Sequence record: MW812341.1
DNA length: 64,000 bases
Strand: one strand, 5' to 3'
Below are positions 4,969-10,553 of this stretch, piece by piece. The notes below the pieces were generated by a model, which was not told where the DNA came from, ran no database searches, and worked only from the letters and a program-made list of their open reading frames with translations. How positions within the stretch are numbered: the stretch's first letter is position 1; each line of letters begins with the position of its first letter. A program made the position numbers and the translations under genes.

Positions 4969-5775
4969 TTAACGGATGGAATCCACAGTCTTACCGTGAC
5001 GGTTCGTAATGTAGACTTCATCACCCTGATAGATAAACTCATAGACAGCACGAGTGGTATCCGGGAGTAAACCATCTGGGTTTATATCAGAGGCATCGTA
5101 CGACAGTACGCCGATGATAAGGTCGGTTGAGCGATTACCACGACGTGAAGCTTTTAATACCACTTCCTGAGGAAGAGCTTCGCTATCATGATAAACGTAT
5201 TGGAGTTCCACTGATGAAACTTCCGTTGGTTCACCGCCTTCCAAATCGTCGCAGTTGTAACCTGCCCATAACGTGTCGCGATTATAAACCGCAATACGAA
5301 TGTTCTCAGCTTGTACAAAATCAAGCGTAGTACGGCGAGTATCAGGATCGCTGTTTGGAATAGCCGCGAAGGTCAAGTCATCGGTGCCTGGTGGCACGAG
5401 ATAGAATGCTTCGTTAACTGTACCTGCCAGAATGTTTTTCTGGAACTCATCGAAGTTGAAGAACCACGTCGCACGATTAAATGAGGTGATACCAGGAGAT
5501 AACTCTTTAACTAAAGCAATGAGTTCTTCTGGGCTCGGGTCTTTAGCCTCGTATGCGGTAGTGAACTTATCTACCCACACATCGATAGATTCAGGCTTGC
5601 CGTTAATCTGCGGCTTCGCGTCCATAGTAGATTCAATCGCGTCCATTGTAACGCGAGACTCTTTCAGTAACGCCATCGCATCTTTAAATACCTGAGACTT
5701 TGAATCACCTAAGGTAGGAGACTCGTGTTCAGTTGGTGTGCGGTTACCATTGATTTTACGTAAGATAGTAAACAT
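4969..5775 (-). CDS. hypothetical protein (268 aa)
   Basis: Long ORF, AGGAGT RBS. Confidence 0.85.
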   Translation of the reverse strand: MFTILRKINGNRTPTEHESPTLGDSKSQVFKDAMALLKESRVTMDAIESTMDAKPQINGKPESIDVWVDKFTTAYEAKDPSPEELIALVKELSPGITSFNRATWFFNFDEFQKNILAGTVNEAFYLVPPGTDDLTFAAIPNSDPDTRRTTLDFVQAENIRIAVYNRDTLWAGYNCDDLEGGEPTEVSSVELQYVYHDSEALPQEVVLKASRRGNRSTDLIIGVLSYDASDINPDGLLPDTTRAVYEFIYQGDEVYITNRHGKTVDSIR

Positions 5776-6100: not shown

Positions 6101-6109
6101 ATAATGCAA

Positions 6110-6190
6110 AGACCGTGGGTGGACTCGAACCACCAGAACCGGTAGGAATCGAACCTCCTGCATCCTAGGATGTTTTCCCAAGACACGGCC
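6110..6190 (-). ncRNA. tRNA-like RNA with two T-arm motifs and no anticodon arm
   Basis: Acceptor GGCCGTG/CACGGTC, T-arm GGTGG-TTCGAGT-CCACC, second AGG-TTCGATT-CCT hairpin upstream; no CCA. Confidence 0.55.
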
Positions 6191-6197
6191 ATAATAG

Positions 6198-6297
6198 GGC
6201 GAACGAAGACAGGATTCGAACCTGTGACCAAGATACCCGCCGGGTATCTCGCTATCCGATTATGAGTCGGGTGTTTATGCCTCTAACTTCATCGTTC
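6198..6297 (-). tRNA. atypical tRNA(CAT) with long variable arm and 8-nt acceptor strands
   Basis: CCGA-CTCATAA-TCGG anticodon arm, GAGATACCC-GGC-GGGTATCTT variable arm, ACAGG-TTCGAAT-CCTGT T-arm, GAACGATG/CTTCGTTC acceptor. Confidence 0.7.
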
Positions 6298-6298
6298 T

Positions 6299-6363
6299 TG
6301 TTTCTGCTGGATTTGAACCAACCTCGTCATTTGGGTGACGACCCCAGACCGACCGGGAGAAAC
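6299..6363 (-). ncRNA. miniature tRNA-like RNA (Trp-like, 6-nt anticodon loop)
   Basis: GTTTCT/AGAAAC acceptor, CCC/GGG D-arm, TCGTCA-CCCAAA-TGACGA arm, GTTGG-TTCAAAT-CCAGC T-arm. Confidence 0.5.
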
Positions 6364-6365
6364 CT

Positions 6366-6590
6366 TTGTAGGGTGAACGCTTGCCATTTAAGGCGGGACT
6401 GATTCTCATCTGCTGGAGCGACGCCGCATAGCACGCTAATTTAAATGAAAAGGCCGCGTTCATTGAATCGAATTGACCGGAGAGAAAGGTGGCTCGTTTT
6501 ATCTCTCGCACTTGTACCCATGCACCCATAGTGAGTCGCTGGGCGGCTCCTTTAATGCGACTCGGGCTGTACCCTACCGTGCTTTCGGTC
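6366..6590 (-). ncRNA. candidate structured ncRNA (about 220 nt)
   Basis: Closing helix GTAGGGT/ACCCTAC, internal GAGTCGC/GCGACTC, GAGAGA/TCTCTC and ATGAA/TTCAT helices; lies inside tRNA array. Confidence 0.5.
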
Positions 6591-6944: not shown

Positions 6945-7108
6945 CAGGAGTAGGCGTGTCATGACGCCTCGTGTTAGTTGCTCGCCTGTGACGGCGCTAC
7001 CTTTAGGGCATCCTAGTGGGGAGTCGAACCCCAATTGCATCCGGCTTGACGCGGGATACAACGTTCCACAACCTAGGCGTTTGAAAACGAACCCCTAAAG
7101 CTCTCCTG
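6945..7108 (-). ncRNA. structured RNA with an embedded, end-less cloverleaf
   Basis: CAGGAG/CTCCTG and CTTTAGGG/CCCTAAAG enclosing helices; inner CCTAG/CTAGG, GTT-GTGG-AAC, TTGTATCC/GGATGCAA, TGGGG-TTCGACT-CCCCA. Confidence 0.6.
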
Positions 7109-7655: not shown

Positions 7656-7732
7656 TGGTTGTCTCGAGTGGACTTGAACCACTGACCTCCCGCTTATCAG
7701 GCGAGCGCTCTAACCAACTGAGCTACGAGACA
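7656..7732 (-). tRNA. tRNA-Ile(GAT)
   Basis: 77 nt, loop CT-GAT-AA, CCA. Confidence 0.95.
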
Positions 7733-7741
7733 TCAAACTGA

Positions 7742-7892
7742 TTGGGACACAGAGAATCGAACTCTGGACCGTGACATTGTCGGTTACTCTAGACCGCTAT
7801 GAGCTACACACCTAGCAGTCACGCTAGGCAAGGGAGGATTCGAACCACCGACCTTCCGACTCTGTCACACTTTACCACTAAGCTATATCCCA
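7742..7892 (-). ncRNA. twin-tRNA RNA: two tRNA bodies fused through their anticodon stems
   Basis: Outer TGGGATA/TGTCCCA acceptor, D- and T-arms; anticodon loop replaced by a circularly permuted second cloverleaf. Confidence 0.75.
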
Positions 7893-7898
7893 ATAAAT

Positions 7899-8019
7899 TG
7901 GCAGCCGCTATAGGACTTGAACCTATAACCTCATCACACCGCACCACACTTGCACGCCATGGACGCCTATGCATAGTTAAAGCGATGTTCTGTCTCTATC
8001 CACTTGAGATTAAGCGACT
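7899..8019 (-). ncRNA. CCA-terminated tRNA body with about 44-nt expanded anticodon loop
   Basis: AGTCGCT/AGCGGCT acceptor + G + CCA, TCTC-AAGTGGATA-GAGA D-arm, CATCGC/GTGATG stem, ATAGG-TTCAAGT-CCTAT T-arm. Confidence 0.65.
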
Positions 8020-8025
8020 AATGTT

Positions 8026-8103
8026 TGGTGCACCCGGCTTGCCTCGAACAAGCGACCTCGGGGGTTTCACTCCCGCGCTCTGACCAATCTGAGCTACAGA
8101 TGC
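8026..8103 (-). tRNA. tRNA-Phe(GAA)
   Basis: 78 nt, loop GT-GAA-AC (unusual G32), CCA. Confidence 0.88.
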
Positions 8104-9045: not shown

Positions 9046-9879
9046 TTACTGTTTCGTCCCCATCACACGAGAAGTGTTCTTGAGGAGAATACTCGATACC
9101 GATTCGAGCAAATCATCACCCGCGTCTGTGTTAGCCACAACCAGCGTGGTGGTACACGGTACGCTAACCTTATCACCAAAGAAAGCAGCAGCGTTAGTCT
9201 CTACCTTCTCTTTGGTGTAAACGGACTGGCCATTAGGCAGTCTGTCGTTAACGTTCCATGTGCTCATGTCAATCAGCTTCAAGCCAGAGCTATCTTGATT
9301 AACGGCATCGAGGAATTTGTTATTCTTACCCGGAGCAGATACCCACAGGAATGCATCGTATTCCCCTGTCGCCACTTTGGACAGAGAACGAATGCCACCC
9401 TTCGCGTAGGTTTCAGCTTTAGAGTATTCTTTTACCAGCAGCTGGAGGTATTGCCAGCTTGCGTAGGAACCGGAGTCTGGGTCACCAACAGCAATCTTCG
9501 CACCGTTGGTCAAATCACCGGAACCGCTAATCTTGCCGTCTTTCTTGACAGCTACCCAAACACATTCACGTCCCAGCTGACCAACGATGTCAACCTTCTG
9601 TGCTTCGTTCGGATGTTGCTGACGCCAGTATTGAAAAGCATCAGCTTGCGTGAACCCAATCTGGGCTTCACCGCTAGAAACTTTATCGAGGTTGTCAGAA
9701 GACCCCTTCGATGGGATAACGCGTGCAGTATTGCCGAACTCATTCAGCGCCCCTGCCAGATTAACACCGTATACAGAGTTGTAAGTCAAACCCTGCTGAC
9801 CGGTGGTAATGATTACTTCCTGTCCCGCCATTGCTGAGAAACTCAGCGCAGCCAATAAACCAATAAGAACCTTTCTCAT
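9046..9879 (-). CDS. TAXI-family (TRAP-associated) periplasmic solute-binding protein
   Basis: Signal peptide MRKVLIGLLAALSFSAMA; TAXI-type motifs ITTG..G..Y, SKGSSDNL, AQIGFTQAD, IAVGDPDSGS. Confidence 0.8.
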   Translation of the reverse strand: MRKVLIGLLAALSFSAMAGQEVIITTGQQGLTYNSVYGVNLAGALNEFGNTARVIPSKGSSDNLDKVSSGEAQIGFTQADAFQYWRQQHPNEAQKVDIVGQLGRECVWVAVKKDGKISGSGDLTNGAKIAVGDPDSGSYASWQYLQLLVKEYSKAETYAKGGIRSLSKVATGEYDAFLWVSAPGKNNKFLDAVNQDSSGLKLIDMSTWNVNDRLPNGQSVYTKEKVETNAAAFFGDKVSVPCTTTLVVANTDAGDDLLESVSSILLKNTSRVMGTKQ

Positions 9880-10127: not shown

Positions 10128-10553
10128 TTACGCGTCGTAGCGCAGGCCAAGGGCTTCGGCGATTTGTTTCAGTACCACTTCTTCTTCCGGCTCAATTTCA
10201 CCGTCAGCTTTAGCGATAGCAATCGCTACGTCCAGCACGTCTTCACATTCACGCTGGTCGCCTTTCACATCACCGATTTCACGCAGGGCAGCACGACGGC
10301 CAATACCGATATCTGCGTCCAGCTGTGCAGTGATGGTTGCAGCGATCTGGTTCAGTTCGCCCTGGAAGTTTGCCAGCACTGGGTTAGCGCGCAGCACTTG
10401 ATCGATTTTCGCTTTCTCTGATGCTTCCAGTTCGCCATCGGCGTAAGCTACCAGGTAAGCGGCGTTAACAACGGCTTGTGCCAGGTCACGTTTGTCGAAT
10501 TTTTTGATATCAGCAACAGCACGGTTAGCACGTTTTTTGAATAAGCCTAACAT
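10128..10553 (-). CDS. terB: TerB-family (tellurite resistance-like) protein
   Basis: AAYLVAYADGELEASE and AIAIAKADGEIEPEE..LKQIAEALGL duplicated TerB motifs. Confidence 0.88.
   Translation of the reverse strand: MLGLFKKRANRAVADIKKFDKRDLAQAVVNAAYLVAYADGELEASEKAKIDQVLRANPVLANFQGELNQIAATITAQLDADIGIGRRAALREIGDVKGDQRECEDVLDVAIAIAKADGEIEPEEEVVLKQIAEALGLRYDA

Follow-up and report, generated by a model that had tools for sequence, protein, structure and literature searches.

Among described RNAs, the closest counterpart of the element reported here is YrlA, a Ro60-bound RNA whose central domain follows the order variable (V) loop, T arm, acceptor-like stem-loop and D arm and mimics transfer RNA (tRNA) (Chen et al., 2014; PMC4201824). 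YrlA is modified by TruB and DusA, and the YrlA of M. smegmatis, which has an acceptor stem of 7 base pairs (bp), is cleaved by RNase P and provided with CCA in vivo (PMC4201824). Some jumbo phages encode Ro/TROVE proteins together with tRNA-like partners (PMC7824862). The element analyzed here lies on the minus strand of a 64,000-nucleotide (nt) window of the Erwinia jumbo phage pEa_SNUABM_9 (genus Machinavirus; MW812341.1; record coordinate = window coordinate + 62,000). It consists of an outer tRNA body in which the anticodon loop is replaced by an inner, circularly permuted tRNA body, the two being joined through their anticodon stems, and is called the twin below. An earlier note on this stretch of DNA (the original prediction) had described this arrangement and knew of no RNA with two such bodies. 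Searches of the full-text literature likewise yielded no example of an RNA in which two tRNA bodies meet via their anticodon stems, nor any mention of the locus in papers about these phages.

Several other known systems share single features with the twin. In the two-piece transfer-messenger RNA (tmRNA), the T arm and the acceptor 3' strand also precede the acceptor 5' strand and the D region, and a long helix takes the place of the anticodon arm, but this RNA contains a tag reading frame and pseudoknots, both of which are missing from the twin. A tmRNA assignment was rejected, with no tmRNA call by ARAGORN and an Rfam tmRNA score of 10 bits that covered the T loop only. In permuted tRNA genes of the Cyanidioschyzon merolae type the 3' half is encoded before the 5' half and the two are joined across the acceptor ends, as in the permuted unit of the twin. 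After circularization and cleavage, the products of these red-algal genes are ordinary tRNAs that possess an anticodon loop. Unlike the algal and archaeal permuted tRNA genes, the bodies of the twin have no anticodon loop and the permuted unit is nested in another tRNA. Species 1 and 2 of phage T4 (rnaC and rnaD) are, like the twin, RNAs located within a phage tRNA cluster; they are stable and of unassigned role, and in rnaC a T arm is combined with an acceptor-like end. Neither of them contains a permuted module or a second body, their architecture differs and they show no sequence similarity to the twin; homology was rejected.

A fold with two tRNA bodies and no anticodon

The minus strand of the window carries a cluster of 15 tRNA genes (ARAGORN). 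The twin is located in a gap of 293 nt that carries no annotation and separates tRNA-Phe (8026-8103) from tRNA-Ile (7656-7732); it is flanked there by a 124-nt tRNA-like unit and by tRNA-Ile, with the 6-nt spacers typical of tRNAs (Table 1). No open reading frame spans the region on either strand; stop codons occur in all frames, and a protein-coding reading was rejected on these grounds.

The twin was assessed by the pairing of its four cross helices. The outer acceptor UGGGAUA/UGUCCCA was paired at 7/7 positions (including one U-G pair), the outer anticodon stem UGACA/UGUCA at 5/5, the inner enclosing stem GUCGG/CCGAC at 5/5 and the inner acceptor CUUGCCU/AGGUGUG at 6/7, with one U.U mismatch, and this last helix continued with three more pairs before its GUGACU loop. 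Each anticodon-stem strand finds its partner about 80 nt away. Paired with themselves, as two adjacent tRNAs, the halves gave acceptors of only 3/7 and 5/7 and anticodon stems of 1/5 each. The four cross helices have an analytic chance probability of ~8e-10, and none of 2,000,000 random strands of the region's composition matched them. The twin cloverleaf was calculated at -43.6 kcal/mol as compared to +2.1 kcal/mol for two separate cloverleaves, and the halves folded singly reached only -11 and -15.8 kcal/mol. The unconstrained minimum free energy structure (-52.4 kcal/mol, z = -3.0 against shuffled sequences) retained all four cross helices. ARAGORN made no call at the twin locus, and the Rfam tRNA model, which has a cut-off of 29 bits, gave two sub-threshold matches (26.7 and 16.6 bits) with acceptor pairs flagged as non-standard. 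The twin fold is real, statistically secure and unusual, and it has been overlooked by scanners and annotators.

Both bodies possess the acceptor stem and the D and T arms of a tRNA, including conserved bases for tertiary contacts, and both lack the canonical 7-nt anticodon loop with an anticodon. The outer body contains a 4-bp D stem, the D loop AGUGGUA, the 5-nt V loop CGGUC, the T loop UUCGAUU and the discriminator A, and its D arm was aligned by the Rfam tRNA model at high posterior probability. Its tertiary bases comprise U8, A9, A14, G18, G19, A21, G26, U54-A58, C56 and G53-C61 as well as G15-C48, a pair provided by the 5-nt V loop. At its 3' end, where CCA is encoded by all 15 cluster tRNAs, the twin has A-UCA followed by the normal 6-nt spacer. 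No close relative of the outer body was found among phage tRNAs; just the U1-A72 acceptor recalls tRNA-Gln. The inner body has U8, A9, A14, G18G19, A21 and the T loop UUCGAAU, and its T stem is paired at 4/5 positions with U.U as the middle pair. Judged by homology to the phages' own tRNAs, of which those of the tRNA-Met and tRNA-Asp types are nearest, the inner body would be better numbered with a normal 5-nt V loop AGGUC, a mismatch at 27:43 and 32-38 as the fifth pair of the enclosing stem. The anticodon stems of the two bodies abut at a 2x2 internal loop with GA opposite AA. In the structural model they stack across this loop, and the predicted rod, about 12 layers long, carries a tRNA elbow at either end.

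These results agree with the structural part of the original prediction. All segments quoted in it were found on the minus strand from 7892 to 7742 with identical letters. Its outer tRNA body and inner circularly permuted body are upheld by the pair counts, the energies and the scanner results, and the GA/AA junction between the two anticodon stems by sequence and fold. A scanner indeed sees two broken pseudo-tRNAs at most, and the halves pair crosswise, also in the minimum free energy fold that had been proposed as a check. The good cross-pairing and the poor energies of self-pairing together support this structural reading. Its description needed correction at three points. The outer body had been called near-perfect, but its 3' end has A-UCA; and the permuted layout of the inner body stood, but the T stem is paired at only 4/5 positions, and homology suggests AGGUC as V loop with an unpaired 27:43.

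Table 1. Coordinates of the twin, its parts and related units (positions in the window unless another sequence is named)
Feature	Coordinates	Strand	Details and basis
Whole twin tRNA-like RNA gene, 151 nt	7742-7892	minus	Outer position 1 to discriminator A; sequence and fold
Outer 5' half	7863-7892	minus	Acceptor UGGGAUA, U8 A9, D arm GCUU-AGUGGUA-AAGU, G26, anticodon-stem strand UGACA; Rfam alignment
GA half of 2x2 internal loop	7861-7862	minus	Sequence and fold
Inner module	7779-7860	minus	GUCGG, V loop, T arm (7833-7849), closed acceptor (7807-7832), UA, D arm (7786-7804), CCGAC
Inner acceptor hairpin	7807-7832	minus	CUUGCCUAGC / GUGACU loop / GCUAGGUGUG; 7 bp including U.U and two G.U, plus 3 pairs
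AA half of 2x2 internal loop	7777-7778	minus	Sequence and fold
Outer 3' half	7742-7776	minus	UGUCA, V loop CGGUC, T arm CAGAG-UUCGAUU-CUCUG (7750-7766), UGUCCCA, discriminator A
UCA in the CCA slot of the outer 3' end	7739-7741	minus	Comparison with cluster tRNAs
Inner-module homolog	L004 2500-2575		pEa_SNUABM_11; 85% column identity
124-nt 'rod tRNA'	7898-8021	minus	Acceptor AGUCGCU/AGCGGCU (7 bp), D arm, T arm, encoded G-CCA; unannotated
Asesino homolog of the 124-nt unit	L005 2505-2632		

The permuted module in a second phage

The sole homolog found was in pEa_SNUABM_11, a phage of another genus (Wellingtonvirus) from the same country and the same sample type. Its module sits within a perfect 9-bp helix followed by a 13-bp terminal helix, the 3' strand of which continues into ACCA. 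The scaffold under the module is a plain 22-bp rod without outer D and T arms, and the second tRNA body is therefore unique to pEa_SNUABM_9. The 119-nt RNA of pEa_SNUABM_11 folded at -48.4 kcal/mol (z = -4.6). Two acceptor-ended scaffolds of different build carry the inner module, and in each phage the element is a cassette inserted straight after a tRNA with tRNA-like spacing. The element of pEa_SNUABM_11 was recognized as an insertion because phage Wellington runs from tRNA-Asn nearly directly into the shared downstream sequence. Past the tRNA cluster, a non-coding stretch of ~400 nt (L004 2605-3020 in pEa_SNUABM_11, L023 1590-2100 in Wellington) holds blocks common to both Wellingtonviruses, beginning with AATGGCATTCCGGAAAAATTTCATTC.

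Comparison of the two modules, which as a pair of sequences are the bare minimum for covariation, revealed double-sided changes with pairing kept in 5 of 24 pairs, of which the enclosing stem and the T stem contain two each and the acceptor hairpin one; one additional pair changed from G-U to G-C. In the true register 91% of cells paired, as compared to 29-44%, with no compensatory change at all, when the partners were slid by 1-3 columns; column shuffles equalled the observed pairing in 12 of 500 cases. The U.U and the two G.U pairs of the acceptor as well as the U.U of the T stem are common to both modules, which indicates that they are sequence-specific features and not decay. The closing loop of the acceptor differs freely between the two phages. 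Judged from this comparison of sequences, the inner module is a conserved and structurally constrained unit. We define its family by a length of 82 or 76 nt, the V loop AGGUC, a T arm with U.U at 51:63, an enclosing helix, the acceptor GGUGUG/CUUGCC with the conserved U.U and two G.U, and the 11-nt D loop AnAGCGGUCUA. All of these are present in both modules.

The original prediction had expected homologs in SPN3US-like and Erwinia jumbo phages and had proposed a covariation check on them. Only one homolog was found, and since it has no outer D or T arm, covariation supports the inner module, through the five double-sided pairs, and neither the outer body, the junction nor the twin as a whole. 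Its comparison of the module with YrlA was apt with regard to topology. YrlA (RF02553) and the inner module have in common the permuted order of V loop, T arm, loop-closed acceptor and D arm, a helix formed by the flanks of the RNA, and D and T sequences of the tRNA consensus. They differ in their location, the tRNA array in pEa_SNUABM_9 as opposed to a position beside rsr, and in the helix on which the domain is mounted, which is the anticodon stem of a second tRNA in pEa_SNUABM_9 and an acceptor-like helix with ACCA in pEa_SNUABM_11.

Further copies were sought with a covariance model (R1) built from the inner module and applied to the tRNA clusters of ten related phages (185 kb), plus T4 and ET08. 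The two known copies scored 109 and 94 bits and everything else 27 bits or less. These other matches were only the YrlA of ET08, located beside its Ro gene and aligned end to end at 23.6 bits, and junctions between adjacent tRNAs or tRNA-like units. The ET08 RNA (L021 28189-28275) is an unannotated YrlA-type RNA ~190 nt upstream of the Ro-like gp220.

BLAST searches (word size 11) of 50,697 phage records with the 293-nt gap and the pEa_SNUABM_11 element matched pEa_SNUABM_9 and pEa_SNUABM_11 only, and artificial 'de-looped' versions of the outer and inner tRNAs found no normal-tRNA parent of either body in the same records. Among exact patterns, the T-arm/acceptor pattern had 8 matches in IMG/VR, all in ordinary tRNAs; the T-arm to D-arm pattern and the outer T-arm/acceptor pattern had none, and the inner D-arm pattern had none in IMG/VR and GTDB genomes. 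A loosened D-arm pattern gave two chance matches in GC-rich coding DNA of JGI metagenomes. The acceptor-junction pattern gave four chance matches in IMG/VR and at least 120 matches in GTDB, 41 of which share a 12-nt gap; among the matches listed, all of these were antisense to one conserved protein-coding region.

Possible roles and origins of the twin RNA

We suggest that the twin may be a processed, functional, non-decoding tRNA mimic, and give this reading a probability of about 0.45. The RNA would be co-transcribed with the minus-strand tRNA array, as the minus strand has no terminator-like site from the top of the tRNA block down to 5897-5872; a sigma-70 promoter scan carries no information for a jumbo phage with its own polymerases. 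It would be released like a tRNA, by RNase P cleavage at outer position 1 and by 3' trimming, and a host enzyme might add CCA. It would be neither charged nor decoding, because it has no anticodon and no anticodon-independent identity element of the G3.U70 type. An alanine-type identity was rejected, as none of the acceptor stems contains G3.U70. The twin would instead display tRNA surfaces (one or two acceptor ends, and two elbows separated by about 22 stacked layers), and proteins that recognize tRNA shape might either be soaked up by it (decoy) or be brought together in twos (tether or scaffold). Such a decoy or tether role, which the original prediction had also put forward, is plausible but conjectural. 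The processed-mimic reading is favoured by the pairing and energies of the twin fold, the tertiary-contact bases kept in the outer body, the constraint on the inner module and its modular reuse, the cassette insertion with tRNA-like spacing and the neighbouring 124-nt unit as a further rod-extended mimic. It is favoured also by the precedent of YrlA, an RNA that shares the permuted order, carries modifications made by tRNA enzymes and, where its acceptor has 7 bp, is cleaved by RNase P and acquires CCA (PMC4201824).

Some observations weigh against a functional mimic. Across the phage records, IMG/VR, GTDB and JGI metagenomes, the twin was found in one phage and the inner module in two. The closest relatives, ChrisDB and pEa_SNUABM_4, lack the entire gap, so that the upstream tRNA (Gln or Phe) abuts tRNA-Ile, and in Asesino the 124-nt unit is directly followed by tRNA-Ile. 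The UCA in place of CCA could mark the onset of decay, and the further T arms outside the called tRNAs of the cluster fit frequent recombination of tRNA genes. The absent CCA and the other odd tRNA-like pieces keep alive a second explanation, which we consider less likely but a serious rival, namely that the twin is a functionless chimera. Recombination would have put a permuted module of the pEa_SNUABM_11 type into a tRNA gene, where it was tolerated and not selected, and the chimera would fold well merely because each parent was a good helix. That the twin occurs once and is missing from its nearest relatives is consistent with this origin, and so are the other irregular pieces in the cluster (two T arms within one unit at 6107-6183; orphan T arms at ~7033 and ~6322) and the tRNA order, which differs between the pEa_SNUABM_9 cluster and every relative examined. 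A chimera accounts less readily for the precise insertion, in which both anticodon loops were trimmed to exactly 2+2 nt and the stems can therefore stack, and for the retention of nearly all tertiary-contact bases in both bodies. Moreover, the inner module is clearly structurally constrained, and no parental normal tRNA of either body was present in the phage records searched.

The twin could also be a two-piece RNA, which we regard as improbable. RNase P would cut 5' of inner position 1 and, after 3' trimming, chains of ~68 and ~72 nt with two free acceptor ends would be held together by the four cross helices, as in M. smegmatis YrlA and two-piece tmRNA. The inner acceptor, with its 7-bp stem and T arm, presents the elements recognized by RNase P, the YrlA with a 7-bp stem is cleaved and CCA-tailed in vivo (PMC4201824), and the two chains were calculated to cofold into the same helices at -46.3 kcal/mol. 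However, the acceptor helix of pEa_SNUABM_9 runs 3 bp past 1:72, so that the leader is paired, and in neither phage is the inner 3' strand followed by CCA. The freely varying closing loop suits a simple cap equally well as a processing site.

It is very improbable that the twin is a YrlA-type Y RNA acting with Ro60, whether with an undetected phage copy or with that of the host, although the permuted topology of the inner module and the Ro/TROVE proteins with tRNA-like partners in some jumbo phages (PMC7824862) would be in line with it. A YrlA gene is characterized by a Ro60 (TROVE) gene within ~4 kb on the same strand. No TROVE domain was detected in the 8 neighbouring open reading frames or in two open reading frames (530 and 601 amino acids) 15 kb off. 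A tblastn search with the ET08 Ro protein (gp220) gave 356 phage records; Agrobacterium, Sinorhizobium and Vibrio phages were among them and Erwinia phages were not, a very divergent Ro or a host Ro60 being outside this search. The Ro-binding motif GNCGAAN0-1G was absent from the twin and from the pEa_SNUABM_11 element in a regular-expression search, and in the control its core GNCGAA occurred once (as GCCGAA) in the 363 nt scanned upstream of the ET08 Ro gene. The Rfam YrlA model gave no match to the twin at E<=10 (311-nt search) and 19.1 bits for the pEa_SNUABM_11 element, as compared to 37.4 bits for the ET08 control, for which the searched sequence was of comparable length. The control itself lies below the RF02553 gathering cut-off of 69 bits, which therefore misses the YrlA of this phage. 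Membership in YrlA was rejected for want of a detected Ro60 gene, a Ro motif and a match to the Rfam model; as far as its sequence indicates, the inner module is built like the tRNA-like domain of YrlA, yet it is not YrlA.

Two adjacent decayed tRNA pseudogenes folding separately, or a tRNA with a spliced intron, are hardly credible: the Rfam tRNA model does align the halves one by one, but their self-paired cloverleaves and single folds are as poor as given above, and excision of the inner unit would leave UGACA-GAAA-UGUCA with no anticodon, an intron being rejected also because there is no bulge-helix-bulge motif and 82 nt are too small for a group I intron.

The tRNA clusters of phages are mostly interpreted as supplements for codon usage or against nucleases, and parts missed by the scanners stay unannotated. 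The present locus indicates that gaps in such clusters can harbour well-folded tRNA mimics incapable of decoding. The permuted tRNA-like design of the Ro60-bound Y RNAs occurs here without a detected Ro60 and appears graftable onto various acceptor-ended scaffolds, even onto a whole second tRNA. If the twin is a stable RNA with a defined partner, it would be a natural bivalent tRNA-shaped ligand and a handle on the recognition of tRNA shape during infection; if it is debris, it would still be a clear example of tRNA-cassette recombination in jumbo phages and a caution for annotation.

Other irregular tRNA-like units

The 124-nt unit next to the twin shares with it the acceptor, D and T arms of a tRNA, a long helix where the anticodon arm would be and the location in the same cluster. 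It differs in that the tip of its rod is a small loop and not a second body, and in its encoded CCA. The rod of ~20 bp carries a conserved GUCCAUGGC tip. Relative to the Asesino homolog, 7 pairs were changed on both sides, 5 of them within the rod. These compensatory pairs demonstrate that the structure of the unit is conserved, which makes it another conserved tRNA mimic that has no normal anticodon loop and shows that rod-extended tRNA mimics recur in these phages.

Further irregular pieces were observed on the minus strand of the cluster. At 6107-6183, an acceptor-like helix GGCCGUG/CACGGUC (7 bp) frames two T-arm hairpins (6142-6158 and 6118-6134) in an unannotated unit without a normal D or anticodon arm. 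At 6201-6296, Rfam recognizes a 96-nt tRNA (39 bits) missed by ARAGORN and GenBank. Its anticodon is CAU, its variable arm is long and its D region odd, and it shares sequence with the 3' end of the coding sequence annotated at 6275-6529. One orphan T arm (7017-7033) is located where 269 nt separate tRNA-His from tRNA-Glu, and GenBank annotates a coding sequence of 45 amino acids on the plus strand opposite it; another (6306-6322) lies within the coding sequence 6275-6529. The small coding-sequence annotations over these orphan T arms may be spurious.

In the Salmonella phage pSal-SNUABM-04, two unannotated tRNA-like units were noticed in a gap of the tRNA cluster. One of them (L026 5449-5562, ~113 nt) has the acceptor GCCGGUG/UACCGGC and ACCA, and in the other (L026 ~5596-5700) the anticodon arm is a 7-bp stem with a UUCG tetraloop. 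Asesino (L005 2987-3107) and Stratton (L024 4297-4416) contain an annotated 'tRNA-Ile(aat)' of 120-121 nt in which, by eye, normal arms surround a long insert; these may be rod-type tRNA mimics and not intron-bearing tRNAs.

The irregular units may represent a family of selected mimics, in which the twin would be a 'tRNA body plus rod' fused with a 'rod plus permuted head'. Alternatively, they may be the litter of frequent tRNA-cassette recombination. A wider view, which we find rather unlikely, is that jumbo-phage clusters contain a hitherto unrecognized class of anticodon-less, rod-linked tRNA-body RNAs that act as multivalent decoys or tethers and form a non-coding layer of counter-defence carried together with the phage tRNAs. 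Its candidate members would be the rod-plus-head RNA of pEa_SNUABM_11, the 124-nt rod tRNA, the UUCG-capped unit of pSal-SNUABM-04 and, as the most elaborate, the twin. Such RNAs might serve as uncleavable decoys for tRNA-targeting defence nucleases or tRNA-processing enzymes of the host.

Finally, the minus strand carries, between tRNA genes of the cluster, a gene for a solute-binding-protein-like product of the NMT1/TAXI type (9046-9879) and a TerB-like gene (10128-10553), and this arrangement is kept in the relatives.

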